Assembly (NCBI GenBank): GCA_040285825.1
Contig: JAUPSS010000004.1
Span: 5,113,784-5,177,783, forward strand
Source: Eukaryota sp. TZLM1-RC
Lineage: Eukaryota; Protista; Metamonada: BaSk clade
Length of the DNA: 64,000 bases
Reading direction: 5' to 3'
Shown here piece by piece: positions 17,654 to 44,229 of the stretch. The position numbers and the translations under genes are program-made. The notes beneath the pieces are model-generated. The model saw only the letters and a list, made by a program, of their open reading frames with translations, had not been told where the DNA came from and did no database searches. How positions within the stretch are numbered: the first letter of the stretch is position 1; each line of letters starts with the position of its first letter.

Positions 17654-20600
17654 ATGTCTAGGGACAAATCAGTCACTGATCTTTTGACCCCTTTGTCTGT
17701 AGCACCTACATGTGCCCTATTCCACATAGAAGGAAGTGAGCATTGTACAGAGGTGGGTAAGGAGTTTGATCTTCATCACCACATCTCATCCTGCTTCTAT
17801 GGGCCAATCCCAAAACTTCTCAATGTTGTTGAAGAACTACCATCCAACACAATGTTCATCTCCCCGGTTTACTACCATGCGTCGTCTGTTACCTACAATA
17901 AGAGGAACATATCAGACATTGATGATTATCAGCTTCTTGTCACTGGCATAGTTGATGGACAGCGGTCTCCTCTCAACACAGTGATTAGTGAAGTCGTTGA
18001 GGAACTTGGTTTTGAAGTAACACCTGATATGATTACTTCACATGGTGAGGCTCTCTCTGCCAGAAAAAAAAGAGGTAGAGCAGAGCTAGTTACAGTACAT
18101 TACTATAGTGTTTGTCTCAACCCAACAGCTGAAAGAACTGGCTCCATCAATGAGAGTGTTTCTCAACTATCACCCATATCCAACTCTCATTCATCGTATC
18201 CAGCGGTAGTTTCAATCTTTGTTTATGTTTCTAATAGTTCTTCTGAGCAACTCAACCAAATCTTACAACGTAGACAACGTCAGAGACGCCCAAATCATCC
18301 TGAAAATAAACACGATTGTGGACATCGTGTCATGGTCATGAATAAGGAAATGTTGGGCCAGTTTATGAATAATCCAGCTTTTTTGCAACAGTCCATTAAA
18401 AACCAGCAGTTGTATGACACCGCTTTGAAGTGTAGTACTGAATCAGAAGCAGTGGAGCTGTTGACCCCTTTGTCTGTAGCACCTACATGTGCCCTATTCC
18501 AAATAGAAGGAAGTGACCATTGCACAGAGGTGGATCAGGAGTTTGATCTTCATAACCACATCTCATCCTGCTTCTATGGGCCAATCCCCAAACTTCATAG
18601 TATTGTTGATGAACTACCATCCAACGCAATGTTCATCTCCCCGGTTTACTACCATGCGTCTTCTGTAAAATACAATAAGCGGAACATATCAGACATTGAT
18701 GATTATCAGCTTCTTGTCACTGGCAAAGTTGATGGACAGCGGTCTCCTCTCAACGCAGTGATTAGTGAAGTCGTTGAGGAACTTGGTTTTGAAGTAACAC
18801 CTGATATGATTACTTCACATGGTGAGACTCTCTCTGCCAGAAAAAAAAGAGGTAGAGCAGAGCTAATTACCGTACATTACTATAGTGTTTGTCTCAACCC
18901 AACAGCTGAAAGAACTGGCTCTATCAATGAGAGTGTTTCTCAACTATCACCCATATCCAACTCTCATTCATCGTATCCAGCGGTAGTTTCAATCTTTGTT
19001 TATGTTTCTACTAGTTCTTCAGAGCAACTCAACCAAATCTTACAACGTAGACAACGTCAGAAACGCCCAAATCATCCTGAAAATAAACACGATTGTGGAC
19101 ATCGTGTCATGGTCATGAATAAGGAAATGTTGGGCCAGTTTATGAATAATCCAGCTTTTTTGCAACTGTCCATTAAAAACCAGCAGTTGTATGAAACCGC
19201 TTTGAAGTGTAGTACTGAATCAGAAGCAGTGGAGCTGTTGACCCCTTTGTCTGTAGCACCTACATGTGCCCTATTCCACATAGAAGGAAGTGACCATTGC
19301 ACAGAGGTGGATCAGGAGTTTGATCTTCATAACCACATCTCATCCTGCTTCTATGGGCCAATCCCCAAACTTCATAGTATTGTTGATGAACTACCATCCA
19401 ACGCAATGTTCATCTCCCCGGTTTACTACCATGCGTCTTCTGTAAAATACAATAAGCGGAACATATCAGACATTGATGATTATCAGCTTCTTGTCACTGG
19501 CAAAGTTGATGGACAGCGGTCTCCTCTCAACGCAGTGATTAGTGAAGTCGTTGAGGAACTTGGTTTTGAAGTAACACCTGATATGATTACTTCACATGGT
19601 GAGACTCTCTCTGCCAGAAAAAAAAGAGGTAGAGCAGAGCTAATTACCGTACATTACTATAGTGTTTGTCTCAACCCAACAGCTGAAAGAACTGGCTCTA
19701 TCAATGAGAGTGTTTCTCAACTATCACCCATATCCAACTCTCATTCATCGTATCCAGCGGTACTTTCAATCTTTGTTTATGTTTCTACTAGTTCTTCAGA
19801 GCAACTCAACCAAATCTTACAACGTAGACAACGTCAGAAACGCCCAAATCATCCTGAAAATAAACACGATTGTGGACATCGTGTCATGGTCATGAATAAG
19901 GAAATGTTGGGCCAGTTTATGAATAATCCAGCTTTTTTGCAACTGTCCATTAAAAACCAGCAGTTGTATGAAACCGCTTTGAAGTGTAGTACTGAATCAG
20001 AAGCAGTGGAGCTGTTGACCCCTTTGTCTGTAGCACCTACATGTGCCCTATTCCACATAGAAGGAAGTGACCATTGCACAGAGGTGGATCAGGAGTTTGA
20101 TCTTCATAACCACATCTCATCCTGCTTCTATGGGCCAATCCCCAAACTTCATAGTATTGTTGATGAACTACCATCCAACGCAATGTTCATCTCCCCGGTT
20201 TACTACCATGCGTCTTCTGTAAAATACAATAAGCGGAACATATCAGACATTGATGATTATCAGCTTCTTGTCACTGGCAAAGTTGATGGACAGCGGTCTC
20301 CTCTCAACACAGTGATTAGTGAAGTCGTTGAGGAACTTGGTTTTGAAGTAACACCTGATATGATTACTTCACATGGTGAGACTCTCTCTGCCAGAAAAAA
20401 AAGAGGTAGAGCAGAGCTAATTACCGTACATTACTATAGTGTTTGTCTCAACCCAACAGCTGAAAGAACTGGCTCTATCAATGAGAGTGTTTCTCAACTA
20501 ACACCCATATCCAACTCTCATTCATCGTATCCAGCGGTAGTTTCAATCTTTGTTTATGTTTCTACTAGTTCTTCAGAGCAACTCAACCAAATCTTACAAC

Positions 20601-20842
20601 GTAGACAACGTCAGAGACGCCCAAATCATCCTGAAAATAAACACGAATGTGGACATCGTGTCATGGTCATGAATAAGGAAATGTTGGGCCAGTTTATGAA
20701 TAATGCAGCTTTTTTGCAACAGTCCATTAAAAACCAGCAGTTGTATGACACCGCTATGGAACAAACACTCTCAAATAGAGGTAATCGAAGGACAAGAGGC
20801 AATAGGGGTAGAAGGTTTAGTTCAGGTAGAGGTAGAGTTTAG
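17654..20842 (+). CDS. Protein of four tandem ~259-aa Nudix-like domains with an RG-rich C-terminal tail
   Basis: Each unit has G(K/I)VDGQRSPLN(A/T)VISEVVEELGF, matching Nudix-box spacing GX5EX7REUXEEXGU with E>R and R>S. First ATG is at 17654. Confidence 0.7.
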   Translation: MSRDKSVTDLLTPLSVAPTCALFHIEGSEHCTEVGKEFDLHHHISSCFYGPIPKLLNVVEELPSNTMFISPVYYHASSVTYNKRNISDIDDYQLLVTGIVDGQRSPLNTVISEVVEELGFEVTPDMITSHGEALSARKKRGRAELVTVHYYSVCLNPTAERTGSINESVSQLSPISNSHSSYPAVVSIFVYVSNSSSEQLNQILQRRQRQRRPNHPENKHDCGHRVMVMNKEMLGQFMNNPAFLQQSIKNQQLYDTALKCSTESEAVELLTPLSVAPTCALFQIEGSDHCTEVDQEFDLHNHISSCFYGPIPKLHSIVDELPSNAMFISPVYYHASSVKYNKRNISDIDDYQLLVTGKVDGQRSPLNAVISEVVEELGFEVTPDMITSHGETLSARKKRGRAELITVHYYSVCLNPTAERTGSINESVSQLSPISNSHSSYPAVVSIFVYVSTSSSEQLNQILQRRQRQKRPNHPENKHDCGHRVMVMNKEMLGQFMNNPAFLQLSIKNQQLYETALKCSTESEAVELLTPLSVAPTCALFHIEGSDHCTEVDQEFDLHNHISSCFYGPIPKLHSIVDELPSNAMFISPVYYHASSVKYNKRNISDIDDYQLLVTGKVDGQRSPLNAVISEVVEELGFEVTPDMITSHGETLSARKKRGRAELITVHYYSVCLNPTAERTGSINESVSQLSPISNSHSSYPAVLSIFVYVSTSSSEQLNQILQRRQRQKRPNHPENKHDCGHRVMVMNKEMLGQFMNNPAFLQLSIKNQQLYETALKCSTESEAVELLTPLSVAPTCALFHIEGSDHCTEVDQEFDLHNHISSCFYGPIPKLHSIVDELPSNAMFISPVYYHASSVKYNKRNISDIDDYQLLVTGKVDGQRSPLNTVISEVVEELGFEVTPDMITSHGETLSARKKRGRAELITVHYYSVCLNPTAERTGSINESVSQLTPISNSHSSYPAVVSIFVYVSTSSSEQLNQILQRRQRQRRPNHPENKHECGHRVMVMNKEMLGQFMNNAAFLQQSIKNQQLYDTAMEQTLSNRGNRRTRGNRGRRFSSGRGRV
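17684..20757 (+). repeat. Near-identical 777-bp tandem repeat, ~4 copies
   Basis: TTGACCCCTTTGTCTGTAGC recurs at ~17684, 18461, 19238 and 20015. Confidence 0.97.
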
Positions 20843-22147: not shown

Positions 22148-22829
22148 AGGCACAAATAAATCAACTTTTTGTCATTCTCTTATTCTAGTTCAAAGTTAAT
22201 TATTGGTCCCAATTAAGGCAAATTTTACCACATACACAACTCCAGCAACAACCAGCATGACACGCAAATCAACAGGTATTAGATGTCAGACATCTTATGA
22301 AAAAAAACCTCTTGCCACCAATTGCCCACATTCCACTAACATCATGCAGCAGGATGAAAAGCATAACGAGGTAACAGACCCGGGCACGCTCCTCAATCTT
22401 GGTAACAGCTTCAGTTGTAGGCATGGACCTGGTGTTCTCCTTTGGCCCTCATTCAGTCAGATGATTGCCAAATGATGTTCCTTATGTTTCCTATCGAAGC
22501 GATGAAAAAGGTGTTATGACTCGCAGAGTTCTGCAAAAATATTTTGCTTGTATAGAAATAAGCGTTTGGGACAGAAAGCAACAAACAAACAGCATTGTTG
22601 GTGACAATGCTCCATAGCAAAATTAATTCCTTAATAAATTCTCTATGTGGTTTATTGATTATTGATGGTCTTGATTGTATAATTTGTAGCTTTCTTTCAA
22701 TGTTGAACCAAAAAAATGCTGGCGTTTGAATTGTAACTTTACCTTCAGAACACTATTCAATTTTGTCTTAAAAGGAAGACGATTTTTTAATTTCCATTAA
22801 TTTCTATAAAATATACAACAAACATTGAT

Positions 22830-25800
22830 ATTTATCGAATTTGCACACTTAATTGAATTAACTACTATCATTGAGACAAGATTTCCTCTACAAAATCTTG
22901 ATCTGCTTGCTGTCTTGCTAAAGCTTCTCTAATTCGATTGAAAAACCGCGGTAATCTATAATAATGGCAAATTGAATCCGTGAACGCCATAAAAAAATAT
23001 CAAATCTTTTCATTGTTTTTCCTTGAACCATTTTTTGGAAGTCATTCAAATAAGTTTTTGCTTCAACTGATAATCTTCCATTTATCGAAAATGGGAAAGC
23101 AATAAAAACCAGCTGTGTATTTCTATCGACATTAGCCTCTTCAATATCATATTTTCTATGTTTTTCTTTTGCTTTAAAATCCAGAGCAGCCACAGGATTA
23201 AGTTTTCTTCTGTGAACCAAAGTATCGTTTGCAACATTACATGAGACAAAGTCAACAATAGCTTCAGAATTATCAATCCAATCACAGTATACATCACCTC
23301 TATCATCAGAACCAAAATTTTCCAGAGAAAGTGTTTCCTTCAGCAGGGGCTCTTTGATACACGATATTCTTGCAGTTTGTGCCATATTGAAAACAGTGTC
23401 TCTAACAGCATCATGTAATGAAGAACGATAAGTTATCAATTTAGATCAATTCAGAGCATGGCGCAAAGTGAGTTAAGGTGAATTCGAACAAATACATTTT
23501 TCTTTTGATAATAATTGATTAATGGGGATGTTCAAATATAATCTCATTTTTGTTACAAATGCTTCATTAGTGGCACACAATCCAAATCTTCGTGGTACAA
23601 TGGTTACAAAAAGTGAAGAATCTGACGCCTTGTTTTCACAAACACCCTTTTCCAATAACAATGAGTGAAGATCTTGATTTAAAACAGCCGAGCTGCAAAT
23701 ATTATTACAAAGATCTTTTTCATACATTCCAGTCAATCTTTTCTGTAATGTTCGAAGAGTGTACTTCAAATTTAAAACATTTTTTTCTGGAATATTGCCA
23801 TTGAATGATTGGGGAAAACATCGACCCCATTTTTCTACATCAATTCTTGAAATTTCTTCATTTAATGCAAAAACAGTGGAACTTTGCGTTGTCATCAATA
23901 AATCTTCCCAATCTGCAAATCTTTCGGAAAACTCAAAGATTGCATTTCTTCATCCACCAACAAAAGCACACGAGGTAAGAATAGAAGCCTTCGTCCACCC
24001 TAAACCACCATAATGTGGACTAAGGTAAGCATGATCTGGAATTTGAAACATTTTACATCCCAGTAATTGAGACAGAACTTTTGCACGTAACTCATTAAAC
24101 TTTTGAGCCAAAGGTCTAGTGACGAGAGGATTTGTAGATCGAAATATATGATTAAAATTGGAACTAAAACACAGTCTTATAATGGTAAATTTGATGTGTT
24201 TTTTTATATCTAAATTCATCATTCGGTCAATTTTGTCAGAAATTGAGTTCAACTTTTCAAAAAATTTTTGGTAATTTCATCATTATTTCCTAAAAACGAA
24301 CCCAGATGACGAATAGCATCAATTGAATATAATTTGGCTTGAATTTCAATATCATCAATTATTGTGGAAACTGGAGAATTCGATAACAAAACACATTTAA
24401 GTAAATTAAATCGGAGACCAATTTTGGTAAATAATTCTTTAAAACATACAGTTGCTTTTTTCACAATATTTAAATCACCAATAAGCACAACATCATCCAT
24501 ATATGCAATCATTTTTAGTAAAGGAAACATCTCTTGAATTTGCAGTAGAATAGGATGAATGGCCAAACAAAACAAAAGAGGTCCTAACGGATCTCCTTGC
24601 TTTACGCCACTTGATGAACTCAAAATGTTGTTACCAAAATGTAAATTAGAATATGTGCAATATGTTTGAAAATATGGTATTAATTCCGGCATATATTGCA
24701 ATAAAGCACCATGGATACTGCGACGACTTAGTGAATTGAAAGCATTACTAAAATCCAATGACATTGGATTGCAAACATTGCAAACATTGGATTCATTTTG
24801 ACGAAATAAGACATCAGTAGCAAAAATCGCTGAAGAGACTCCATCTGTAGTATTTATACCATATTGAAAGGGTAATAAAATCTTTTTAGCTTTTTCATTG
24901 AACCTGCTTAAGCAACACGCAGAAAAAATATTGTGTAAGCTCTCAGAGACTGCAATAGGACGAACATCCATTTTTGAATTTTTGACAAGTGCAGTCAAAC
25001 GAGAACTTCTTAATTCATCTGGATATCTGAGTTGCCCGTTCAATATTTTGTTGAAAAATTTAGTCAATAAACCAAGGCAATCTTCTGAAGAAATCATCGC
25101 GGCTTTTACATGATCAATAGTAATACCAGAAAGTCCGGCAGACTTACCACGAGGTCTCTTTTTGATAACCGAAAAAACTTGTGATGGCATCAATGGATAA
25201 TTTTCCCAGTATGTGCCGTAAAAATTTTGATCCATTATAGGGTCTTCATAAGGATGAAGTATTTTCAGTTTATCTATTGTATTTTCATTGTTCGGTGCTT
25301 TAACTCCGGGACTTAAAGCTGACAAGGCCTTGGACCATTTGTTGTCAAAGCATTTGTCTTCAAAAATTTTACTTAATTTCTCGGATGACTGAGTTCTCGG
25401 TGCTATATTAGTTAAATCTTCGGAAATATTAACGAAGTTTTGTTCAAAAGCAGGACAAAAAGAACCGAAAAATTCCCAAATAATATTGATAGCATACTTT
25501 CCTTTACACAATTGATCCAAAAATCTTTGAAAAACGAAAGCAAATTCATTGCATTTGGTCGGATGAATTTCTTGAGGTATTCTTATAGGAGGATGGTAGT
25601 TATCAACTATGCGGCATTTCAAGCAGCGGTCAGAAGTTTTTCCTTTTGCATTTTTTCTAAAAGAAATACCACAAGTGTTGCAAGTTTTGTGCTTTAATCG
25701 GTTGCCAACTGGTTTTGCAACAATTTGTGGAGCATTATTTAGGGGTTCTACCTTAGACTCTTTCCTTCTAATAAATTTTCTTTTACATTTTGTTTCAGAA

Positions 25801-26110
25801 TTTGCCGCATCAATTTTTCCAACATTGGGGCATGTTAGAGCATTATGTCCCTGTTGTCGACACTTTGAGCATCTGTAGGAGCGTGGCTTTGTTTTTGAAC
25901 AAACTTTGTTTTCATCGTGATTGTCTAAAAATTCTTGATCAGAATTTTTTTTGTCCAAAAATGAAGAGAGAAGAGGTTGAGGAGGAGAGGTGGAAAGGAC
26001 GTCTTGAGCATCTTGTTGACTATCGTTCTTTCTTTTGACTCCATTAGAATCAGAAACTGATTCAGGCATCAACAAGAAAGAATAGAAGCAATCATCTCGG
26101 TTCAGCAAGG
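22830..26110 (-). mobile_element. Longest family A non-LTR copy (N-terminal CCHC knuckle, RT, RLE), disrupted
   Basis: CSKCRQQGHNALTCP knuckle, RT YMDD and RLE domain, split into ORFs 24249-26108, 23950-24252, 23473-23898 and 22918-23439 by stops/frameshifts. Confidence 0.92.
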
Positions 26111-26154
26111 TTTTAAGTTAAACGGTTATATGTAGAGGAAGAAAAAAAATTGTC

Positions 26155-26680
26155 TTGGTTAATAAACCAAGACAATCCTATGAAGAAATAATTGCGGCTT
26201 TAACATGATCGATAGTAATACCAGAAAGTCCGGCAGACTTACCGCGTGGTCTCTTTTTTATCACTGAAAATACTTCTGATGGCATCAATGGATATTTTTC
26301 CCAGTAAGAGCCGTAAAAATTTTGATCCACTATAGGGTCTTCATAAGGATGAAGTATTTTTAGTTTATCTATTGTATTTTCATTGTTGGATGCTTTAACT
26401 CCGGGGCTTAAAGCTGACAAAGCCTTGCACCATTTGTTGTCAAAGCATTCGTCTTCAAAAATTTTACTTAATTTCTCGGATGACTGATTTCTCGGTGCTA
26501 TATTAGTTGAATCTTCGGAATTATTTACGAAATGTTGTTCAAAAGGAGGACAAAAAGAACCAAAAAATTCCCAAAGAATATTGATAACATATTTTCCTTT
26601 ACATAATTGATCCAAAAATCTTTTAAAAACGAAAGCAAATTCATTGCATTTTGACGGATGAATTCCTTGAGGTATTTTTA
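26155..26680 (-). mobile_element. Internal fragment of family A non-LTR element
   Basis: 145 aa ORF is a diverged copy of the pre-RT region at ~25070-25580. Confidence 0.85.
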
Positions 26681-27552
26681 TGGTATTTTTACAACAAACA
26701 TCAAATTATATATTTTCATATCCAAAATTAGCCAAAAAGAATTTACTGGAGACTTTTCTCCCGTAAAAACCTCCAAGCAGTTACAGAGCAGAAGATAGTA
26801 AGAGTACAACACCTTTGAGAATTAAAAATATTATTCTATTCTTCCAAGAAACCTGATCAAAAACTTTTTTTGTTAACTGTTTCATAAAATTACAGAGACA
26901 GTTTATAATTTTTATGCTGATTGAGCATTCAACTGAAAGCAACCTCTCCATTGAAAAACATCTTTTTAAAATGTCAGGTTGTTATATCAGCGAATTGCTG
27001 ATGTCGGTATTTTGTATTAAATGAATACATTAATCAACTTGTAAATCAACATTCGAATATTACATCTCTCCAAATCCAAATCAACAAGATGCAACTCTCC
27101 AATGGTATTGCTTTAATTCGTGAATGGGTGGAGACAGAAGAAGATATCTCACAAAATGATCAGGTATAAGATGACAGTTCAAGGACTACTGCTTGAGATT
27201 GAACAGAAAGTTGTGTTGACTTCGAACTGTACCTCAAGTTTCATTATTCTGCATGGAAATTGATTATACCAATCGACCAAACCGTTGTTACACTGTAGGT
27301 GCATACACTCACAATGCACACTTGGGGTAACCATCATTTCATCAACGAATGATCACTCAATTTCAATTACTTTGTTAGGAAACAATGATGCCAATTGTTT
27401 CAATGAACCTAACAAGTGTGTAAATGCAATAAATTGACGTAAATCACATTCAAGCAAAATTCCTTTATGAAAGTGAAACTATTGAATAAGAAGCAAGAAA
27501 GCACAAGTTGTCTGATACACATATAACCACAAAAAACTAAAACTGAAACAAA

Positions 27553-28529: not shown

Positions 28530-30728
28530 TTATCGTGATGATTTTTTCATTGATAACTTTTTTAGAGATCTGGCACCTTTGCCTATATTCATCTCCTTCT
28601 TCATTTTTTTGAGAAACACAGATGCAGATTTCTTGGACGAATCTTGAAATGTGGACTTTAACTCATTCAGTCGTGCATCATTCACTAACAATTTTGTCTC
28701 TGAAATTCCATTCAAAATACCCACCACTTCTGCACATAATTCTTGTCCAAGAACGGGTTTAAATCCGCATAAATAAGTTAGAATAACAACAATATAGTTG
28801 ACTACCAAAGATGCGGTTGTTTCTGAGTGTGCGAAAGGCTTTCGTAAACAATTCTTAAATAATGGAATAAGGAGCTGTGAAGTAATGTGAACAACATGAT
28901 CTTGATGAACAGTAGCATCATCAGAACTTGTTATGCTGTCCAATATGACTGTTACCTCTGACAACAATCCTTTGATAGGATCAGTTGGTAATATCTCTCC
29001 ATTTGTTAAAACATTAATCACTTCGAGAGCCCTACAGCTTGTGGATTCCACGAAGCACATTGCTGCAATTATACGTCCAGCAAGATTTGTTATTGCTGTA
29101 TCTGACGAGGAAAAACATTGTGTAACAATATCAAACAGTTTTCCACTATATCTAGTAACAATAAATGGATGTCTGCACAAGAATAAAACACAATTCAAAG
29201 CAACCCCTGAAACATCACTACCCTCCACCACCATTCCGCATAAGTTCTGCATCATAGTGTGAAGAAGATTAGCACTGTTGAACGAAACTATAGCTTCCAG
29301 CGTTGCCTCAATACTTGGAAAATCCTCCAGTGCCCAACCATCGTCTCCTTGCATCATAGATTTAAACAGAGATGAAAGAAACGTGCTTGTTGAGTCATAG
29401 TGTATAATAAAGAATGGCAAGAGTGACTCTTTGATAGTCAAATTAGAATTCATCATAGCTTTTCTGATTTCTTTGGAGAAACAATCTGAAAAACTACTAT
29501 TACGTGATGATGTAAGTAGCATAACGTTGTCCCAAGCACTCGTCGTTGACATTGCTTTCAACTGAACAATCCTAGGGATGATTGATGTTGTTATAAGAGA
29601 AAACAGAGGTTCTGTTAGTGCAGCACCATGCTTTAATATTGTGTCTATATTGTCAACAATTGTGGCTTTAGGTACTTCACAATTTGATTTCTCTAGAAAC
29701 GCACCAAACAGCGACTTCAAGAAAGAAGAAAGGTTAGAAGGGCACGGAAAACACTGCAAGTATCTCTCTATGAACCCACACAAAGAGTTGATAAACTCTG
29801 GTTGTATATCGCTCAAAATATGACGAGATATTACGTCAGAAAAAGCATTATCAAAGACTGCAAAATCATGTTCTTGTGGTGGTCTTTTTGATAAGAGTAG
29901 TGTTAATATAGAAAATTTCTGTGCAATATGTAATTCATTTAAATTTAGTATATAATGTAATGCTTTGATAAAATAAGTATCTGACAAATAAAACAAAACA
30001 AGAGCCTTAGAGTAACAATCAAGCAAATTAGGATCAGAAATGGTTATTTTTGAGCTAATGACCTCATAAAGGGTTGAAAAAGGATCATCTACGAATAAAC
30101 TAAAATGTTCAAACTTAGATTCCAAAAAATCAAAAAATAAATCAGATGATACAAAATCTGGGGATGAGCATAATAAAATTATTGCAGTATTAATAAAATT
30201 TTCGGGAGATTTAAATGATTGTGAATTCATATATAAATTAATAATAAATTTACGAACATCTAGTCCAATATTTGTACTAGTTAGTGATATTAAAAGCTCA
30301 AAAGGGGGCTCAATAATGTCCTCTTGAGAAGTTATTTCTGAGGACTTTAATTGACTTTCTGTTGGTTTCTTTGCAGTTTCAATTAGTTCAGTTAATAAGG
30401 GAGCAGGTGGAAGACTTCCAGAGACTTCTTGCGAAAGTGTTAGCGCAGCCAATGATAGTCCTTGTGAATCCAGATAGTTCTTGATGGATGAGAGTAAGAT
30501 TAGATCAGGAGAAGAAGTCGTAGCGGTGTTATTTGTAGACTTGGTAACAGGAGCTGAAGGGGTGCTGTGGGAAGAAGATACCGTATTATATGTGTTCTGG
30601 AAGTAGGACCGAAGCTTGGGAGCCTCTTCATTGATAAAAGAGAGTTCCTGAACAAATTCCAATGCTGTAAGAGGGAATGACTCAATATTGTCATACAGAA
30701 AGTCAGCAAATTGAGTAGATGTAGGCAT
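28530..30728 (-). CDS. RELCH/KIAA1468-like LisH + HEAT-repeat protein
   Basis: N-terminal FPLTALEFVQEL...PKLRSYFQN and LisH-like IKNYLDSQGLSLAALTLSQEV resemble the RELCH N-terminus. First ATG is at 30728. Confidence 0.65.
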   Translation of the reverse strand: MPTSTQFADFLYDNIESFPLTALEFVQELSFINEEAPKLRSYFQNTYNTVSSSHSTPSAPVTKSTNNTATTSSPDLILLSSIKNYLDSQGLSLAALTLSQEVSGSLPPAPLLTELIETAKKPTESQLKSSEITSQEDIIEPPFELLISLTSTNIGLDVRKFIINLYMNSQSFKSPENFINTAIILLCSSPDFVSSDLFFDFLESKFEHFSLFVDDPFSTLYEVISSKITISDPNLLDCYSKALVLFYLSDTYFIKALHYILNLNELHIAQKFSILTLLLSKRPPQEHDFAVFDNAFSDVISRHILSDIQPEFINSLCGFIERYLQCFPCPSNLSSFLKSLFGAFLEKSNCEVPKATIVDNIDTILKHGAALTEPLFSLITTSIIPRIVQLKAMSTTSAWDNVMLLTSSRNSSFSDCFSKEIRKAMMNSNLTIKESLLPFFIIHYDSTSTFLSSLFKSMMQGDDGWALEDFPSIEATLEAIVSFNSANLLHTMMQNLCGMVVEGSDVSGVALNCVLFLCRHPFIVTRYSGKLFDIVTQCFSSSDTAITNLAGRIIAAMCFVESTSCRALEVINVLTNGEILPTDPIKGLLSEVTVILDSITSSDDATVHQDHVVHITSQLLIPLFKNCLRKPFAHSETTASLVVNYIVVILTYLCGFKPVLGQELCAEVVGILNGISETKLLVNDARLNELKSTFQDSSKKSASVFLKKMKKEMNIGKGARSLKKLSMKKSSR

Positions 30729-30848
30729 ATTGAGCTGTGAGCCGTGATCTGCAATATTTATATCCAAGAAATTGTTAAGTTCAAACTTGTTTACGTGAGA
30801 AATTCCCACAAGATCACGATCAATTTTCGTGTGGAATAATTGCAAAAA

Positions 30849-33012
30849 CTATCTACTAGACAGATACTGAGGCCTTTCATTACCACTCATTCTGGCTTCA
30901 GCAATTGCAAACATATTGAGACAGGCCAGCTTATTTCTATTGGAAAGCTCTGGTGAACCCTTGTTACTCAGTTTGCAACTCTCACTGTTACAAGCTAATA
31001 AACCATGACATGACATGTAGTAACATGAGTCTTTTCTCTTCTATAGCATCTGGGATTTGTTACTCTCAAAAACGTAGCAACCTTTTCAAAACAAACAGGA
31101 CATTTTGCTGAAGTGAACGCTTCATTAATCAGCAATACTTCAAATCCATTTCTTTTCAGAAATTGAATCCATCCAATGCCTCGAGTAGGTCTCTGATGTT
31201 TCAAATTCTTGGAACCTTTTTTACCATAATCACCCATTAGAATTAAAGTGTCTTTTGGATTGCCAAACTGCTCAACAAGGCTTTTTAACAACCAACTTTC
31301 AGTCTTTTGTTTGTGAATAAAAGCTTGCATCTTATGAATGCTCCACAAGTCAAGACTGATGCTGAACTGGCAGCAAATGCGGACAATTCGGCGTTTGCAT
31401 CTTCAATTGTCGTTTCGTTAGACTCTTTCATTCGGTGCCTGTCGTAATCTACCCCAGTATACTGTGTAGCCCATCGTTTTTGTTTTTCATTCATCCTAAT
31501 TTTCAAAGACCAGGACATCGGAGTCATTCTCAACCATTTGTACTTCTTGTCTTGATTCATCACCCGACTATTTCTTTGCTGTTCAATTTCATGTTCAGGC
31601 ACTATGGCTAGTTCTTCATCAGTGTTTTTGCTGCCAAAATACAATAAATCACGTTTTCTAGGATCACAAACAACAATTCGTTTGTCTTGAAAAGTATCAA
31701 CATCAACATCATCAATAAATAAATCAGCAATACTGGCCTTGTTGTCTGGCTTACATTTCTGACCTTGTTAATCCCGACGAACAAATTCTACTGCAATATT
31801 AAATCCATCTGTGTGGATAATGTTGTTGAATTTATAGCTCTTCTGCTTGAACATTGGTTGGTTTAAATCTAGAATATTAGACCAAAAGTCAAATTGCTGA
31901 GGTGGTTTGAATTTCGTAATTTGGGCTAACGTGATGGACATTTTCTGCGTCTGTGTAGATGATAAATCATCCATTAATGTTTGTTAAATAATTCTCCATA
32001 TTGTTCTTGTATCAATAGGAAAATATCCAGGACCTACAGTGGTTGAAACAGGAGAAATATGATAACGTTTTTTCTCTCTATTGGAGAAATATTGGGCAAT
32101 TGTAATTGCTGGTTTTAGGAATTATTGAGGATCTTTTTCAACAGCGTCTGCAAGAAAATGTATATCCACTGGAAATATATTATCAACTAAATTCTCGTCA
32201 GTGACCAAATTCTCAATTTGGCAAGTAAATGGCTCAATAAGACCTTCAAATATGTCTCTAAGTTCATTGTTTCTTATATCATGTTGTTCACATAAATCGA
32301 AAATTTCATCATTCAGAAGGTTTCAAATATTTTCATGATGAAACACAGAACTCAAGCAATCTCTATCATTAACTAAAAACATGTTTTTGAATTTACGAAG
32401 CCTAAATCCATCCAGTGAAATAATTGTAGATAATGGCGTTGAGTATCCACCCAGCTTGTGTATTTCTGCTAACACGTTTTCCACATCTGGTTTGTCAAAG
32501 TAAACATTAATAAATCGATTAATATGTTTTTCATAATTTAGTTTCAAATTATTCTCAAAATTGGCAAACATTACTGGAGCCATATACTCAGGTGGTCTAC
32601 TGAAGCCATCAGTTGAAAATTGTGGAAAAAACTCCAGCCCATATCTCAAATGGTCTATATAACTCAATGTTTTGTTCAACTTTTGTTGTTCAAAGGTAGT
32701 CGATAATCTATAATGTCCTTCACCATAATCAAAGTCTTCAAAATCCTGTGGAAATGCACTTTTTGGTTTCACCATCTTTTGCCCCATAATACTCAGCTGA
32801 AATATAACGAATTTTGCCCATGAATGAATCATATAATTGGCAGATATTCGTGGTATTAAAAAATTACGTTCAAAACAAGACTGTAAATACAGCTTTAAGC
32901 AACATGTGGCGTGAATTCGTAATTGTTGAAATTTTACAGCAGTTTCTCTCAATTTAAGTATCGCATTTGAATGTTTAACCATTGAGTTGACGGTTGCTGG
33001 AATGGTTTTATA
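30849..33012 (-). pseudogene. Fanzor1-type RNA-guided RuvC nuclease gene (Fanzor A), disrupted
   Basis: Manual translation gives YKTIPATV...IHATCCLKLYL, FENNLKLNYEKHINRFINV, PGYFPIDT, IHTDG, RuvC-I VVCDPRKRDLLY, FGNP...LMGDY, RuvC-II INEAFTSAKCPVC, NPR, HGLLAC...C, RuvC-III NRNKLACLNM and C-terminal GNERPQYLSSR*. There are 4 in-frame stops, one frameshift near 31350 and a 5-bp TGTCA duplication near 31010. Confidence 0.9.
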
Positions 33013-33044
33013 AGATGATAAAATAAATATGTCTTTCTGAAACA

Positions 33045-33650
33045 TCACGAAAAGTTTCAGACAAAGGATACAATCATGAAGCCCATAATGAATTGAATTT
33101 TGTATCAGAGGAGAAGTAGCTAAACAATCAATTGGCACAATATGGAAAAATTCCTGATGAAGTTTGATTTTCTTTTCATTTTTCATTCTATGTGCCTGAT
33201 TGCCTAATACATGTCAAAATCAAGATGCAGTAAATTGTGATTAAGACAACAATGGGGTTGATGATGATGAACCTGTGAAGCAAGATTTTTTCGTCAGGGA
33301 ACATTTCTGCCTGAACATACATATCAATGTCTGCTAATCTGATTTGAGGACTCATTCTCAATATAAGTGAATATTTGCTCTCCAAACAGAAATTATGGTG
33401 GTCAAACTTACAAATAACAATCGAAATTAAAAACACTTTTTGATTTGAAATCCACTCACCCATTTGCTCATCAGTTTTCTTTTTCAAAAGATTTGCTCCC
33501 TCTTTTCTCTTCTTGTTGATAATCTCATCAGGAGGGAGAAATTGGCCATCATGATTTTGGTAAAGATGACCATGCTGATAGGTTTCAAGATCAAAGCACA
33601 TAACAGTAGGAAGATTTTGATTTGGGGTCAAAGATTTGAATTGAATCAAT
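33045..33650 (-). pseudogene. PolB-type DEDDy 3'-5' exonuclease domain directly upstream of, and partly in frame with, Fanzor A
   Basis: ExoI VMCFDLETY (D at 33592), FPDEKILLHRF, ExoII-like NHNLLHLDFD in a shifted frame (~33210-33242) and ExoIII HYGLHD (33073-33090) within the same ORF (32323-33186) as the Fanzor N-terminus. Confidence 0.7.
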
Positions 33651-33894
33651 GGATCAGGCTTGAAGCCACTACGACTTGGCTCATTTTTTTGACCTTACTC
33701 AATAGGTTTCAATGGTTTTTTTCTCAAAAATTTCCTTGTTCTCGATATTCAACATTGTAGTCTCAATACAAATTTTTTTGGTTCAATGCTTTTTGTTGTT
33801 TTTTTAGCTTGCGCTTTGATGTTTGTTGGTCAAAAATCGCATTTCTAATGATTTTTGATGGAGGAGTTGATTTAAAATTAGATCTTCTGTTTCT

Positions 33895-33936
33895 GGGACC
33901 AGGATTTGCTTAAACATCTCCATCCATTGTTAAATC
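33895..33936 (-). other. 2A/StopGo ribosome-skipping peptide motif (Glu codon position is TAA)
   Basis: GAT TTA ACA ATG GAT GGA GAT GTT TAA GCA AAT CCT GGT CCC = DLTMDGDV*ANPGP; the consensus is D(V/I)ExNPGP. Confidence 0.75.
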
Positions 33937-33994
33937 AACAGTAAATGGGTTTGTTGATAGACGATGTTGGCAGCTACTGGATTGAAAAAATAAA

Positions 33995-34443
33995 TAATAG
34001 AGATAATAAAACTCAACATATTCAAAATAACAATTCAAGACACAACATCCCGTATCTAAAGTGCAAGAATCTAAAGCAGAAAAATGAACAAACTCATAAA
34101 CATCAAAACAAAAATGTAAAAAAAACATATACAAAAGAAACATCCCACATCTACAGTACCACTACGTAAACCACAAAAAACAACAAACTGAAAAACATCA
34201 AGACAACAATTCAAAACAAAACACAAACAAGAAAAACTTCCCACATTGAACGAGCAAGTGCCTAAACCAGAAAAATCAACAAAATCAAAAACATCAAAGT
34301 AACAACAATGTAAAACAAAAAACAAACAAGAACAACATCCCATATCTACAGTACAAATGGCTAAACCACAAAAACAACAAACTCAATAACATAAAAATAA
34401 CAATTCAAAACAAAACACAAAGCAGAACATCGCGTATCCAAGG
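33995..34443. repeat. Degenerate ~96-99 bp tandem repeat, ~4.5 copies
   Basis: CATCCC(A/G)YATCT-like and TAAACCA(C/G)AAAAA-like motifs recur at ~95-99 bp spacing. Confidence 0.8.
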
Positions 34444-36059
34444 TGATTATCACCATGGCTGATTCAACATCACCCATATCATGACTCACATGATGACTGA
34501 AAAAAGTGCAATACTCTACCCCTACGGAAGAATCAGAACGACGATTCATATAGGAAATCGAGGCTTTGACCTTCAGTTTATTCCTGTAAAACAGGATGAC
34601 TGATCCCGACTGAGGAGTTCGGGAGCAAGTACTCTGCTGTTCTCTGAAGAACAAGTTGAAGGAGGAGGTGGGAACTGAGTCCGTAACCTCGTTATCCTTT
34701 TTCTCCTTTTGCTGCATGAATCATGATGAATCATGCTGCATGATGTTAGAAGAATGGGAAGAGTCAAGATAATTTCGCTGTCTGACACGTTGTCTGACAT
34801 GTTGATTGCAATTTCAAATTGATTGCTAATTTCCACAATAATATCAAATGCCTATTTACTGTATCTCTATTAGTGGTCATCAACATCAGCTCGATTAACC
34901 CTCTAGCTGTTCTGATCGTTGTTTCTCCGACTAAACTGTATGTTTTTTCCAGTTTCCTTCTCCTTCCTTTACCTCTTGTACTCTTCCCATTCATCTATCT
35001 CAACAGTTCTCCCTTTCTCTCTCCCTCTCTATTTCGACGGGACCTAAACATATACTTGTTTCCCTACTTTCTACTCTGTCTGTTTATGGAATCATTTTTC
35101 AGAATACTGTTATTCTCCTGTTTAACTACGGAAATATGGAAATGATGATGGATTGATTCATATTGCTGTATATCCCTGTGGTGGAGGGGTAACTGTGTTG
35201 AAATGCATACTTTCGTCAAGCATCATTCAAACTTATTCCAAGAACTTTCATTCTTGGTAAGATCGTCCACAGACGTTCTAGAATACTCGAATAATTTGCC
35301 ACCAGTCTCAGTGAGCCCATTTCTCCTCTAAAACAATACGTAGTTTTCGGACTCTTGAAAAATCAGCTTTTCTGGTTAATAACCTATTTCTGAACCTTCA
35401 CTGTTGTGAATGTGCGGGGTGGATAATAATATGTGTAAATACTAGTGAATAATATTTTCATAATTTAATATATATATATAATAAAATATAATATTAGCGA
35501 CGGTAGTATTATAGGTGAATAAAATGGAACTACACTACTATCTCCCTTCAGTATCTCTACACCATCTCTTGATTAGCTGGTGTTTGTGATCTACAACTAC
35601 AATGGCTGTTTCGTTTTTCTATTTTGAATACTTAATTTATGTGGATTTCATTTGAATTGCATACCGTGATTGTGACAGCTTTGGATTTGAAAACTTTTTG
35701 AATTTTGTCATTTTGTCCCAGAGTTTTTACAAGCACGTAGTTGTTGCCGTTAATTGAACTGAATCTTTTCTGTTTTCTTATAAAGATTTCAAATGTGTTC
35801 TCCTTAACCCCCTTCGAGCATTCAGATATAATTGGTGATTTACCATTGATCGTGTTACGTTATTACCTTCAGAATACTTGTAGTTACCGATAGTTGATAT
35901 TTCCAGCAGATAATGGTTTAATTTCTGCATGTCATAAGCATCTATTGATGAGTGGGTCAGTGAGACCCACTCACTGTTTATATAATTGAGCATTTAAAAA
36001 TTTGATCTCAGAACCTAGTTGAGAGATGGTTTGATAAAAGTTGGTAGTAATTTTCATTT

Positions 36060-36801: not shown

Positions 36802-37113
36802 CTAGAAATTCTTTCTACCAGTAGCATGAGGAGGAAAACATCGGGAATGAACACCAGGTGTTGGAGATGGGAATAAAGAATCAGAAGGTGCAACAGAGCC
36901 AATAAGGTTGGTTCGTTTTGTGCGAGACCAGAGAATTGAGTTTCCTTTAGATATGTAGCGAATTCTGTGTGATGGTACAGATAAGGCAAGAAAATCGTGA
37001 AGAGCGAGGAAGAATACACCGCCAAATCTATCCTCAAAACCAACAAAGAAACGTTCTTTAGACAAAGAAGTATCGTGGACTAATCTGTTGATTATGCTGA
37101 GAGCGTCTTTCAT
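36802..37113 (-). CDS. MJ1316/DUF504 RNA cyclic-phosphate-recognition domain protein (LENG9-like domain)
   Basis: IINRLVHD...FFVGFEDRFGG...VPSHRIRYI...LWSR..RTNLI matches the MJ1316 pattern (V.NRI.WD...VGY.DRF...IP.HRI.Y...W.R). Confidence 0.75.
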   Translation of the reverse strand: MKDALSIINRLVHDTSLSKERFFVGFEDRFGGVFFLALHDFLALSVPSHRIRYISKGNSILWSRTKRTNLIGSVAPSDSLFPSPTPGVHSRCFPPHATGRKNF

Positions 37114-37320: not shown

Positions 37321-39277
37321 ATGACAGACACCCACTCTGTGTCACGTGTATTCACTCGGTCTTGTGCACTTAACTCGCTGCTGACCCCTACAGCGGTGCA
37401 ACAAATTCGGACTGACCTTCCTTTGGTCACCGAGATTTGTCATGAAGCTTCTTTATTGCTTCAATCTTTTCTTCTAAATTTTCCGTTGGCATCTAGAGCT
37501 TTAGTGGAACAGGATGTATGGTATCTGTTTATGACCGTCATCACCACTGGTTCTTTTCCAAAGCCTTCCACATCTAAAGGCCAACGCCAATTACTCCATA
37601 TCTTTTACAATGGATTTCTTCCTGAATGCCCACAAGACAGCTCTCTTGTTTCTTTGTGGGAAAATTCTTTGGTGCCTTATAGAAATTCATTCAATCTTTT
37701 TCTCAATGCTTGGCTGCAGTCTGAGAATTGTAATTTTATTAATAGAAAAGGGCTTTCTCCTTACCTTGCTTGTCGGGCTCGTCAATTGGCGTCTAACGTG
37801 AAGACAAGTTTACCTAAAATTTGTGAATCCTGGACAAAAAACTTTATTCGTGCTCATTGAAGAGCCCTGGATAAAACAAATGTCTTTGCAAATAATATTC
37901 TTTCACTTTTGCCAGATGAACCATTAGCCCAACCCGAGGAAGTTGCTGTTGATTCTGTTCTTGAATACTACATCAATTTCAATTTGTATAATTCAAGAGA
38001 AAGATTCTTTTTATTAAATGCATGTAAGTTTATCTTGAATCTCCTTCACAGATTTCCTACCACTGCCTCCCTACTGTCCTCAAATGATAAAATCACCTTT
38101 TCATCAAAGGAAATTGGTGAGCTTTTTCTCTTCAATCTTAAAATTTCACAATAATTACTCACTTTCTTTTCTCATATGCATTGCTGGAAGAAATTAAGAA
38201 TAATACCTTTAGCTTCTCATAAAGGTTTTAAGTTTCTTGAGGTTCCTTCACATGTTTTCCACTCTTTGAAAAAATTTCCACTTATTGAAGGATTATCTTC
38301 CAAAACAAAGTTTATCAGAAATACATGTCTGAAACGAATATTTAAACAATGTCCTTACCAAAAATTTAATATCAACAGAAAAAGTTTGAAAAATAGATTT
38401 AAAAAAATTTTATTGAAAACTAATGGTAATGAACTGCTTTTGACCTTTGAATGTAAAAATTATGACTCAGAGAACACAGATGAGCTGGATGAACCACCGA
38501 AAAAGAAAAGAAGATCAAAAAATGAAATGAAAAGTAACCCTGATGCCAACAAAACCAGAGAAACACAGTTGAAGGGCACTAAAAAAATGCCCCGTCGAAG
38601 ACGTAGACATCCAGTCGAAATTTTACCTGAAAGGCCCCTTATCGGCGTTGATCTTGGCCAATCCAGATTATGTGGTTACTTCTTAAATGATTATCAATGT
38701 GGAGTTATCCCTTGTCCAACTGGCAGAAGATACATGACAAAACCTTCACCCAGTAAACAATCTCCCAACCAATATTCCGTTCAAAATTTCAACCAATATT
38801 TAAACCATTGGAATTTGGTCAGGAAGAAAGTGTATTTGAAAAAGTAATCACCAGAAATGGAAAATAATTAAATTTGATAACCGCAGACGAAAAGAGAGAC
38901 GCTTCAGAGAGACTCTCAACAAATTTCAAAGGCTGGCTGGACATCCTGATAAATTCTATCTTGCTGTGGGTTCTGCAAATTTCCCTTCTCATTGCCGAAA
39001 AGTCAATCGATATGGATCAGCAAGGGCTTTCAGAAAATGGTTGTGTTATCAAAAGGATGTGAAGCAATTGTCAACCAGTGAATTAAATACAAGCAAACTT
39101 TCAAGTTGTTGCATGGCCGAGAATATTCAAGCAGGCTCATGGCAGATGCGTATTTGTACTGAGTGTCAAATAGTATATGACAGAGATATTTCCGCTTCAA
39201 AAATTATTCAAATTAAGAAGAAAGCGGAATTGTGGCCAGAAAGATACATTTGCCCAGATGCTCTGTTGAGGAGATGA
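37321..39277 (+). pseudogene. Fanzor1-type RuvC nuclease gene (Fanzor B), 2 in-frame stops + 1 homopolymer frameshift
   Basis: ORFs 37321-37860, 37909-38154 and 38176-38847 are in one frame. Removing one A near 38842 joins them to KWKIIKF...LAVGSANFP. Motifs: IIPLAS, LKTNG, RuvC-I LIGVDLG, RuvC-II SELNTSKLSSCC, CTEC, RuvC-III YDRDISA, and NLS-like PPKKKRR. Confidence 0.85.
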
Positions 39278-39562: not shown

Positions 39563-40600
39563 TTGATGTAGAAAAATGGGGTCGATGTTTTCCCCAATCA
39601 TTCAATGGCAATATTCCAGAAAAAAATGTTTTAAATTTGAAGTACACTCTTCGAACATTACAGAAAAGATTGACTGGAATGTATGAAAAAGATCTTTATA
39701 ATAATATTTGCAGCTCGGCTGTTTTAAATCAAGATCTTCACTCATTGTTATTGGAAAAGGGTGTTTGTGAAAACAAGGTGTCAGATTCTTCACTTTTTGT
39801 AACCATTGTACCACGAAGATTTGGATTGTGTGCTACTAATGAAGCATTTGTAACAAAAATGAGATTATATTTGAACATCCCCATTAACCAATTATTATCA
39901 AAAGAAAAATGTATTTGTTCGAATTCACCTCAACTCACTTTGCGCCATGCTCTAATTTGCTCTAAATTGATAACTTATCGTTCTTCATTACATGATGCTG
40001 TTAGAGACACTGTTTTCAATATGGCACAAACTGCAAGGATATCGTGTATCAAAGAGCCCCTGCTGAAAGAAACACTTTCTCTGAATAATTTTGGTTCTGA
40101 TGATAGAGGTGATGTATACTGTGATTGGATTGATAATTCTGAAGCTATTGTTGACTTTGTCTCATGTAATGTTGCAAACGATACTTTGGTTCACAGAAGG
40201 AAACTTAATCCTGTGGCTGCTCTGGATTTTAAAGCAAAAGAAAAACATAGAAAATATGATAAAGAAATTGAAGATGCAAATATCGATAGAAATACACAGC
40301 TGGTTTTTATTGCTTTTCCATTTTCGATAAATGGAAGATTATCAGTTGAAGCAGAAACTTTTTTGGATGACTTCCAAAAAATGGTTAAAGAAAAAACAAT
40401 GAAAAGATTTGATATTTTTTTATGGCGTTCACGGATTCAATTTGCCATTATTAATAGATTACCGCGGTTTTTCAATCGAATTAGAGAAGCTTTAGCTAGA
40501 CAGCAAGCAAATCAAGATTTTGTAGAGGAAATCTTGGTTTAATGATAGTCGTCCCATTAGTTATGATTTAATTTAATCAAGTGTGCAAATTCAATAAATT
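39563..40600 (+). mobile_element. 5'-truncated family A non-LTR copy (RLE end)
   Basis: Nearly identical to the reverse complement of 6760-7797; ends ~45 bp upstream of the FERM ATG. Confidence 0.92.
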
Positions 40601-41667: not shown

Positions 41668-42284
41668 CTGTTTTTGTAATAAATTTGTAGATTCCATAAG
41701 TCAATAGTTAGAAGTTAAACAGTTGAACTTGGTTAATATTATATTTCAACATGATATCCATTATTGATGACTAGATTAACGCTATGAAACTTTGTCTTCT
41801 GGGGAAGATATGACAAATTTGCAAAGAATTTTGAAAAATAGACGGGTTTTTCTTATTTTGGGGTTTTCAAAAAAAAATTTGTGTCAAGTTACAAACCATT
41901 TGCCCTCTTTCTTTCACCGTTTTTCACCATTGCTGAATTGCTAAATGGATTGGTAATACTAATGTGTATAGCGGAACTTCAATCAAAAATACAACTTTTC
42001 TTGTGTTTACATCACCTTGAATCATGAACACTGCAACTCAACATTGAAAACAAATTCTCATTTTAATTTCGTGTTTGCAAAACTGGTTATTTCTAAAAAG
42101 CAAATCACATTTTGAATTGTGTACGACACTCATTCTCGAACTCACACTTATCGTATTTATGTTTGTCAACAGCCTACTTTTTAACTTTGAGCAATCTGTT
42201 ATTCTTAAGATCATGAATTTCTCAAAGGCTATGCAATTGGCCAAATTTGTTGTGTCTCAAAATTTAATAAATTTATAATACATG

Positions 42285-44229
42285 TATTTATTGAATTTGC
42301 ACACTTAATTAAATTAACTCATAACTAATGGGACGACTATCATTGAACCAAGATTTCCTCTACAAAATCTTGATCTGCTTGCTGTCTAGCTAAAGCTTCT
42401 CTTATTCTTTTGAAAAACCGAGGTAATCTATTAATAAGGGCAAATTGAATCCGTGAACGCCATAAAAAAATATCAAATCTTTTCATTGTTTTTCCTTGAA
42501 CCATTTTTTGGAAGTCATTCAAAAAAGTTTCTGCTTCAACTGATAATCTTCCGTTTATCGAAAATGGGAAAGCAATAAAAACTAGCTGTGTGTTTCTATC
42601 AGCATTAGCCTCTTCAATTACTTTATCATATTTTCTATGTTTTTCTTTTGCTTTAAAATCAAGAGCAGTCACAGGATTAAGTTTTCTTCTGTGAACCAAA
42701 GTATCATTTGCAACATTACAAGAGACAAAGTCAACGATAGCTTCAGAATTATCAATCCAATCACAGTATACATCACCTCTATCATCAGAACCAAAATTTT
42801 CCAGAGAAAGTGTTTCCTTCAGCAGGGGCTCTTTGATACACGATATTCTTGCAGTTTGTGCCATATTGAAAACAGTGTCTCTAACAGCATCATGTAATGA
42901 AGAACGATAAGTTATCAATTTAGATCAATTCAGAGCATGGCGCAAAGTGAGTTAAGGTGAATTCGAACAAATACATTTTTCTTTTGATAATAATTGATTA
43001 ATGGGGATATTCAAATATAATCTCATTTTTGTTACAAATGCTTCATTAGTGGCATACAATCCAAATCTTCGTGGTACAATGGTTACAAAAAGTGAAGAAT
43101 CTGATAACTTACTTTCACAAACACCCTTTTCCAATAACAATGAGTGAAGATCTTGATTTAAAACAGCCGAGCTGCATATATTATTATAAAGATCATTTTC
43201 ATACATTCCAGTCAATCGTTTCTGTGATGTTCGAAGAGTGTACTTCAAATTTAAAACATACTTTTCTGGAATATTGCCATTGAATGATTGGGGAAAGCAT
43301 CGACCTCATTTTTCTGCATCAATTTTTGAAATTTCTCCATTTAATGCAAAAACAGTGGAACTTTGCGTTGCCATCAATAAATCTTCCCAATATGCAAATC
43401 TTTCGGAAAACTCAAAGATTGCATTTCTGCATCCACCAACAAAAGCATACGAGGTAAGAATAGAAGCCTTCATTCACCCTAAACCACCATAATGTGGACT
43501 AAAGTAAGCATGGTCTGGAATTTGGAACATTTTACATCCCAGTAATTGTGACAGAACATTTGCACGTAATTCATTAAACTTCTGAGCCAAAGACCTAGTG
43601 ACAAAAGGATTTGTAGATCGAAATATATGATTGAGATTGGAACTAAAACACAGTCTTATAATGGTAAATTTGATGTGTTTATGTATATCTAAATTCATCA
43701 TTCGGTCAATTTTGTCAGAAATTTAGTTCAATTTTTCAAACAATTTTTTTGGTAATTTCATCATTATTTCCTAAAAACGAACCCAAATGACGAATAGCAT
43801 TAATTGAATATAATTTGGCTTGAATTTCAATTCCATCAATTATTGTGGAAATTGGAGAATTCGATAACAAAACACATTTAAGTAAATTAAGTCGGAGACC
43901 AATTTTGGTAAATAATTCTTTGAAACATACAGTTGCTTGTTTCACAATATTTAAATCACCAATAAGCACAACATCATCCATATATGCAATCATTTTTAGC
44001 GAAGGAAACATCTCTTGAATTTGCAATAAAATAGGATGAATGTCCAAACAAAACAAAAGAGGTCCTAACGGATCTCCTTACTTTACACCACTTGATGAAC
44101 TCAAAATGCTATCACCAAAATGTAAAGTAGAATATGTGCAATATGTTGATTGAAAATACGGCATTAATTCCGGCATATATTGCAATAGAGCACCATGGAT
44201 ACTGCGACGACTGAGTGAATTGAATGCAT
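42285..44229 (-). mobile_element. 5'-truncated, disrupted family A non-LTR copy
   Basis: RT (YMDD) to RLE in fragmented ORFs; same 3' UTR as the other family A copies. Confidence 0.9.

Follow-up and report, generated by a model that had tools for sequence, protein, structure and literature searches.

Does a Fanzor nuclease that lies directly behind a 2A peptide and the motifs of a 3'-5' exonuclease record a real fused protein, or the chance meeting of unrelated remnants, and what would an RNA-guided nuclease gain from such a partner? Known Fanzors are stand-alone nucleases whose natural role is unsettled. The locus that raises the question lies on the minus strand of a 64,000-nucleotide (nt) stretch of contig JAUPSS010000004.1 (positions 5,113,784 to 5,177,783; assembly GCA_040285825.1) of the metamonad Eukaryota sp. 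TZLM1-RC, called the window below, where an original prediction made from the letters alone had read a degenerate 2A-exonuclease-Fanzor polyprotein. Our analysis upholds an ancestral exonuclease-Fanzor fusion behind a 2A, on the evidence of intact relatives encoded by single open reading frames (ORFs), matches to Pfam PF03104 and matches to solved family-B DNA polymerases (PolBs), and identifies the window copy as a dead member of a Skoliomonas-specific mobile element. This decayed copy of a multi-copy element covers at least positions 30795 to 35080 (right end set at 30795, left end at 35080 or further upstream) and carries, in order, a Cys-rich leader, a 2A, a basic linker, a PolB-type DEDDy exonuclease and a Fanzor1. 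Skoliomonads are free-living anaerobic metamonads, protists of soda lakes. Three have been described, Skoliomonas litria, GEM-RC and TZLM3-RCL (PMC11316075), and by elimination TZLM1-RC is presumably S. litria.

We base the fusion on four relatives with unspliced ORFs, P0032, P0064, P0041 and P0002; P0006, P0031 and P0003 are spliced database models. As the original prediction required, other copies keep the upstream exonuclease in frame with the Fanzor, in TZLM1-RC as well as in TZLM3-RCL (hereafter RCL). P0002, which is 83% identical, runs from ExoI through ExoIII on into the Fanzor and passes PF03104, and P0041, an unspliced 1195-aa ORF on the window's own contig, reads through Cys-rich 32-aa repeats, an intact 2A, the linker, an exonuclease from which ExoI has been deleted in frame, and a complete Fanzor; the ExoIII-Fanzor junction of the window matches that of P0041, which is unbroken, at 81% identity. 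Among the RCL proteins, P0032 (940 aa, unspliced) is an exonuclease-Fanzor, P0064 (1905 aa, unspliced) has the order leader-2A-Ulp1-Ulp1-exonuclease-Fanzor, and P0029 is a leader-2A-exonuclease-Fanzor split by a Gypsy element, while in GEM-RC1 the C-terminal half of the exonuclease is still joined to the Fanzor (P0005). Leaders and proteases differ among subfamilies, some of which carry one or two Ulp1 proteases; the 2A and the exonuclease-Fanzor junction are constant, the linker between the two enzymes is very short, and no 2A stands between them. That a Fanzor was inserted by chance into a PolB remnant, or that the join is an assembly artefact, might be argued from an assembly built on Nanopore reads and from window exonuclease pieces that miss Pfam, but it is hardly credible: at least six subfamilies from three genomes share the same junction, with catalytic residues conserved and dN/dS (the ratio of nonsynonymous to synonymous substitution rates) below 1, and the intact single-ORF relatives refute it. 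Exonuclease-bearing Fanzors of the three genomes form one clade (support 96/99, in a tree with a small outgroup set and several partial rows), which is consistent with a single capture of the exonuclease.

Two relatives deserve separate mention. In P0026 (RCL1_001071), a 2027-aa protein whose start resembles a DEAH helicase, the gene call places the exonuclease-Fanzor at the C-terminal end, possibly through insertion into a host gene or a merging of gene models, and at L006:13308-19525 a Gypsy element with identical 103-nt long terminal repeats (LTRs) sits inside the Fanzor part of a 2A-exonuclease-Fanzor, whose RuvC-II/III half resumes beyond it.

The family appears to be narrowly distributed. 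With the junction ORF as query, phmmer gave close matches confined to Skoliomonas, and among 1.84 billion representatives the matches outside Skoliomonas were just weak ones, to Fanzor1-like proteins without an exonuclease. Searches of a 5.8-billion protein set, which were limited by word and length and in one case to 8000 candidates, returned Skoliomonas matches alone; scans of metagenome and viral contigs with single proteins, a method that detects close relatives only, found no relative; and tblastn with the ExoI piece gave zero matches in phages. The Fanzor part itself belongs to a 42-member protein cluster in the TZLM1-RC genome.

The exonuclease remnant of the window (33040-33607), delimited by its motifs, sister alignments and the fold of its relatives, carries ExoI as CFDLET (33598-33581), ExoII as HNLLHLD (33239-33219; family form HNLMQFD) and ExoIII as HYGLHD (33090-33073). 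The four acidic residues and the ExoIII Tyr are conserved in the family and split by deletions in the window copy; the ExoII Asp and the ExoIII Tyr and Asp are invariant across subfamilies that are 25-50% identical, and the ExoI Asp and Glu are present in every alignment row that spans ExoI. A DEDD profile match, proposed as a check on the window segment, was not obtained from the window, because its exonuclease pieces are too fragmented to hit Pfam, but it was obtained from relatives, where P0002 (the 83%-identical sister protein), P0006 and P0008 score 30.5, 50.5 and 60.7 bits against PF03104 (curated cut-off 23). Against solved structures the best sequence match of the exonuclease profile is Pol delta (2e-12). 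Structure modelling, also proposed earlier, succeeded for the exonuclease, whose model is PolB-like (predicted local distance difference test, pLDDT, 80; predicted template modelling score, pTM, 0.81; Foldseek E=4e-9 to Pol delta), and failed for the full-length protein, whose model is poor (pLDDT 46). Structural Z-scores are 12-17 for cellular and most viral PolBs and at most 11.3 for stand-alone DEDD enzymes; as to the donor lineage, Pol delta leads slightly, and the PolB Z-scores lie near each other. No DNA_pol_B (polymerase) domain was found in any relative scanned. By sequence and model, then, the domain is a PolB-type exonuclease with predicted 3'-5' activity on DNA, and the protein itself is no polymerase. 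Comparison of those TZLM1-RC copies that have decayed less gives a dN/dS of 0.29-0.5 for the exonuclease; from RCL family A to family B it is 0.22 for the exonuclease and 0.21 for the Fanzor. Both domains evolved under purifying selection.

The Fanzor part is a Fanzor1 by sequence, structure and right-end criteria, and is predicted to be an RNA-guided nuclease. Compared with the PDB, profile A1 retrieved PpFz1 (1.3e-26), SpuFz1 (1.6e-26) and GtFz1 (2.3e-9), then Pol delta, and the top Foldseek matches of the Fanzor part are SpuFz1. Window copy and relatives alike have a D/E/N RuvC triad, in the window with the Asp of RuvC-I at 31677-31660, the Glu of RuvC-II at 31129-31109, adjoining the CPVC half of a zinc finger (31105-31091), and the Asn of RuvC-III at 30938-30915. 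A dead RuvC could be read from the change of the third Asp to Asn; we reject this, since GtFz1, which has the same D/E/N triad, is active (PMC11423790).

The window copy is a pseudogene, as claimed, and the stops, indels and deletions that we read by alignment to sister copies L002, L007, L008 and L010 exceed the damage first noted. Its 2A reads DLTMDGDV*ANPGP at 33936-33895, with a TAA at 33912-33910, and is the sole NPGP in the six frames of the window; the basic stretch, ExoI and ExoIII lie on the minus strand where the original prediction had placed them, and about 21 codons separate the ExoIII Asp from the Fanzor start (YKTIPATV, 33012-32989) within one open frame (33204-32326). This frame, described as uninterrupted, is indeed open, but two frameshifts within it (-1/+1, at 32838/32782) compensate each other. 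A single A-run frameshift had been supposed between 2A and ExoI; the sister copies reveal four indels instead, within the basic linker (33599-33894), namely +1 near 33779, +1 near 33728, +4 at 33704-33701 and -1 near 33685. The linker also holds an NLS-like KRKLKKQQK (33816-33790), for which a role in nuclear localisation seems plausible. The "NHN...DFD" taken for ExoII has to be replaced by HNLLHLD, as the cited FD spans a 182-nt deletion at 33216, by which about 61 codons between ExoII and ExoIII were lost; a 13-nt deletion at 33268 lies ahead of it. The Fanzor1 pseudogene (30849-33012) has stops at 32325, 32124, 31986 and 31770, which with the TAA of the 2A make five; it has also lost 68 nt at 31359 and gained a 5-nt duplication (31017-31013). 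A TAG at 33336 was left uncounted, since it stems from a frameshift in L010, the copy used for comparison. Private changes of the window copy have a dN/dS of 0.46-0.63, and 1.1 in the leader, which is more relaxed than in the better copies. The sequencing-run records are contigs that contain 14-16% of the window's words, and they show sister-copy alleles.

Nor is the 2A the 5' boundary that it had been taken for, as the ORF begins some 800-950 nt further upstream (about 34717-34880) with the Cys-rich leader. This decayed coding region (33937-34880, start near 34880 or 34717) is rich in Cys, Phe and Val, moderately hydrophobic, and includes four tandem repeats of 95-96 nt at 34036-34429, each encoding a 32-aa Cys-rich leader repeat; they are coding, being in frame in P0041. 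The leader frame is open in P0041 and P0047, and in L008 the sense frame is open and all antisense frames are closed, which rejects the leader as an antisense by-product. Downstream of the leader, the intact 2A of P0041 reads DLTIDGDVEANPGP, and the core is also intact in P0031, P0064 and P0033; its Glu codon is TAA in the window and AAA in L007, each one change from the GAA of P0041. Given this core and a match to the DLTxDG upstream class defined in PMC12846837, the motif can be assigned to 2A/StopGo and is a predicted site of ribosomal skipping; some RCL copies match W-x-K-DLTxDG. Such peptides occur in non-LTR retrotransposons (PMC3708506). In some RCL subfamilies (L006:10733; P0010 and P0057) His replaces the core Glu, giving DVHKNPGP and DIHPNPGP.

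The ends of the element bear on how it may be guided. Element DNA in the window is 88-92% identical to L002, L008, L009 and L010, and these five TZLM1-RC copies share the same end base, some 54 nt beyond the stop, and have unrelated flanking DNA (window 30795, L002:13066, L008:13642, L009:12046, L010:12444); beyond it, the bin 30550-30741 has zero coverage by related contigs. In five of five cases the right end lies 22-66 nt before a same-strand host start codon, as does the right end at L005:12875; about 3.7% of the intergenic positions across these loci are so placed (a rough background that depends on gene calls), and therefore guides would derive from host gene starts. A right-end hairpin occupies the same position in two species. 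With modest structural support from this hairpin and the fixed end, we regard the right end as the usual Fanzor right end and as a candidate omegaRNA scaffold (30795-30885) that overlaps the ORF end; the candidate 15-nt guide (30780-30794), proposed from Fanzor1 architecture (PMC10432273), would lie in the host DNA beside the element, and the ATG of the next host gene (30728) is 66 nt downstream. The host gene that starts there (28530-30728, minus strand, about 730 aa) has a LisH-like stretch by eye and no Pfam match, and its frame is open back into the element tail.

Copies that stop just before host genes would yield read-through transcripts in need of trimming, and DEDD folds include RNases, so the exonuclease might serve to mature the 3' end of an omegaRNA that reads into the host gene, cutting it back to guide length. 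We consider this very unlikely, as sequence and fold are nearest to the exonuclease domains of DNA polymerases rather than to RNase D or T, and in other Fanzors the guides mature with no enzyme fused to the nuclease (PMC10432273).

At the left end, homology to L010 stops at 35080. Further upstream, the remnant of a second Fanzor is present in the window, in L002 and in one sequencing contig, and L008 has a different one. In the window, a conserved block at 35198-35347 (minus strand; common to L002, partly L008, and one sequencing contig) is probably the 3' end of this second family, Fz-C, and a further remnant of the Fz-C gene, in the same orientation, lies at 35751-35963 and is 84% identical to L002:8876-9086; its continuation in L002 has a weak Cas12f1-like_TNB match (E=0.0045), and contig record 6 links Fz-C to the leader. 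Other Fanzor families thus stand directly upstream of the leader (Fz-C in the window and at L002:8750-9616, a different one at L008:8100-9350), either as two-Fanzor units that move together or as families that stack at start codons. No consistent target-site duplication was seen by eye. Of the known element classes, a Helitron is rejected, as PIF1 adjoins one copy (L011), without a Rep domain, and is absent beside all others; a Polinton/Maverick or endogenous virus is rejected, as the 11 loci share no protein-primed PolB, integrase, packaging ATPase, capsid genes or long inverted repeats. The viral contigs, too, contained no close relative of the exonuclease-Fanzor.

Our results lead us to propose, with a probability of roughly 58%, that a guided cut is followed by 3'-5' trimming of the end on the side of the target-adjacent motif (TAM), which would help homing. 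The free 3' end of a single strand is the preferred substrate of PolB exonucleases, and resection usually means 5'-3' degradation, which is outside this enzyme class; trimming of a 3' tail, rather than resection in that sense, is a plausible step for the exonuclease. Ribosomal skipping at the 2A would free a nuclear exonuclease-Fanzor from the leader, and this protein would load an omegaRNA that consists of the right end and some 15 nt of adjoining host sequence, and would cut the empty allele at a distance of about 14-21 nt from the TAM. Fanzor1 is known to cut at this distance, with its WED and REC domains holding the TAM duplex (PMC10432273). Cutting would free the 3' end of the displaced non-target strand on the TAM side, and the exonuclease, tethered at the TAM-binding WED end, would trim it back toward the TAM and so block simple re-ligation. 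Since the filled allele has the element after the TAM, the tail of 15-20 nt would be mismatched to that allele and would have to go before copying; repair synthesis could then copy the element in, as homing or restoration. OMEGA nucleases have been argued to act through homing (PMC13565253), and intron homing in phage T4 relies on 3'-5' exonucleases, among them the proofreading domain of the phage's B-family polymerase (PMC2988022).

Several observations weigh against this proposal. Folding of single-copy omegaRNAs is no better than that of shuffles; the records include no RNA run; the full-length model is too poor to show the exonuclease reaching the cut end; and synonymous divergence between the RCL families, which underlies their low dN/dS values, is near saturation. 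Seven loci searched have no inverted copy of the right end upstream, and the called genes of L001-L011 include no transposase that would carry the element to new sites.

Two other roles can be set beside the homing proposal. The exonuclease could act independently of guides in the element's own copying or integration, on 3' flaps or the ends of intermediates. It may have been left over from a parent element or virus that carried a PolB, in which case the fusion would serve only to co-deliver it to the nucleus. Eukaryotic mobile elements typically carry 2A peptides, Ulp1 proteases and PolB parts; in this family the left ends appear ragged, and a transposase was not seen. Yet modules that act separately are split by a 2A or long linkers here, every subfamily has its exonuclease attached immediately to the Fanzor, and no copy has a polymerase domain, so that this role appears unlikely. 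Alternatively, destructive trimming might produce deletions at the guided site, in empty alleles, rival elements or viral DNA, as engineered nuclease-exonuclease fusions do; the anatomy would be the same as for homing, and other Fanzor families crowd the same pre-gene sites, which makes competition for sites plausible, but guides would come from host gene starts, where deletions harm the host without copying the element, and we find this decidedly unlikely. Trimming in aid of homing thus remains our preferred reading. A stronger version, in which one protein cuts and trims to the TAM and host repair copies in a self-contained, transposase-free RNA-guided element, aimed at gene starts and co-expressing proteases by means of the 2A, is offered tentatively and with considerable doubt.

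The remainder of the window holds further mobile DNA and a few other genes. At 37321-39277 (plus strand) lies a Fanzor-like gene of another family, Fz-B, with internal stops and a third Asp that is canonical; the protein clusters to which it belongs number 82 and 27 members, all from the TZLM1-RC genome among those listed, and in L003 an Fz-B copy stands head-to-head with the exonuclease-Fanzor without common spacer DNA. Head-to-head with the window's Fz-B is a stand-alone gene for an MJ1316 RNA cyclic-end-recognition domain (36802-37113, minus strand, E=1.7e-11). Non-LTR retrotransposons, CRE/R2-like by eye, occur at 6760-9364 (RVT_1 match for 6821-9364), 22829-26681, 39563-40599, 42271-44229 and 49262-50638, and such elements often truncate Fanzor copies elsewhere (L003, L009). 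A Gypsy-like gag-protease-RT (reverse transcriptase) polyprotein, recognized by eye, at 1820-6193 (minus strand) resembles the Gypsy in L009. Finally, 17621-20842 (plus strand) is a 1073-aa ORF made of four 777-nt repeats of a NUDIX-like domain that are 96-98% identical, and 14903-15937 (plus strand) is a gene of the proline racemase family (E=9e-62), here in a metamonad.

The exonuclease-Fanzor1 is apparently a real and undescribed variant of Fanzor1. A natural fusion of this kind is absent from the main texts of the founding Fanzor papers and a 2026 review, recent 2A surveys do not mention Fanzor or TnpB, and literature searches (Fanzor with Skoliomonas, with Ulp1, polyprotein or Helitron, and with exonuclease and 2A; TnpB with DEDD), whose scope excluded most subscription papers and supplements, found no such fusion. 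A single capture, together with selection through deep divergence, points to a post-cut step that limits the selfish spread of Fanzors, and the homing hypothesis becomes testable by mutating one domain.

Each module resembles a known system and departs from it. Like the Fanzor1 proteins SpuFz1, PpFz1 and GtFz1 (PDB 8gkh, 9cf0, 9cer), the protein has the order WED/REC/RuvC/TNB, a RuvC-II Glu just before the zinc finger, a fixed right end after the ORF and the D/E/N triad of GtFz1; unlike them, it has an N-terminal PolB exonuclease, a 2A, a leader and optionally Ulp1, and no terminal inverted repeat was found. The exonuclease shares ExoI DxE, ExoII NxxxFD, ExoIII YxxxD and its fold with the proofreading domain of family-B polymerases, but in contrast to Pol delta, alpha and epsilon and the herpes and large-virus PolBs it has no polymerase domain, is fused to a Fanzor and carries a helical basic insertion after ExoI. 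The 2A has the same D(V/I)ExNPGP core as those of RNA viruses and of APE-type non-LTR retrotransposons (Ingi, L1Tc, L2, CR1, Rex1), whereas here it heads a Fanzor polyprotein and has a His core in two RCL subfamilies. In T4 intron homing the nuclease likewise cuts away from the insertion site and 3'-5' exonucleases (DexA, gp43) affect efficiency (PMC2988022), but these are phage proteins of their own and the nuclease is a protein-guided one, which makes the analogy a functional one. The engineered TREX2-SpCas9 is likewise described as a guided nuclease joined to a 3'-5' DEDD exonuclease (PMC13370227); it is artificial, while the Skoliomonas fusion is natural and under selection. The latter may therefore be seen as a natural counterpart of the nuclease-exonuclease fusions built for genome editing, for which intact ORFs, P0032 and P0064, exist.

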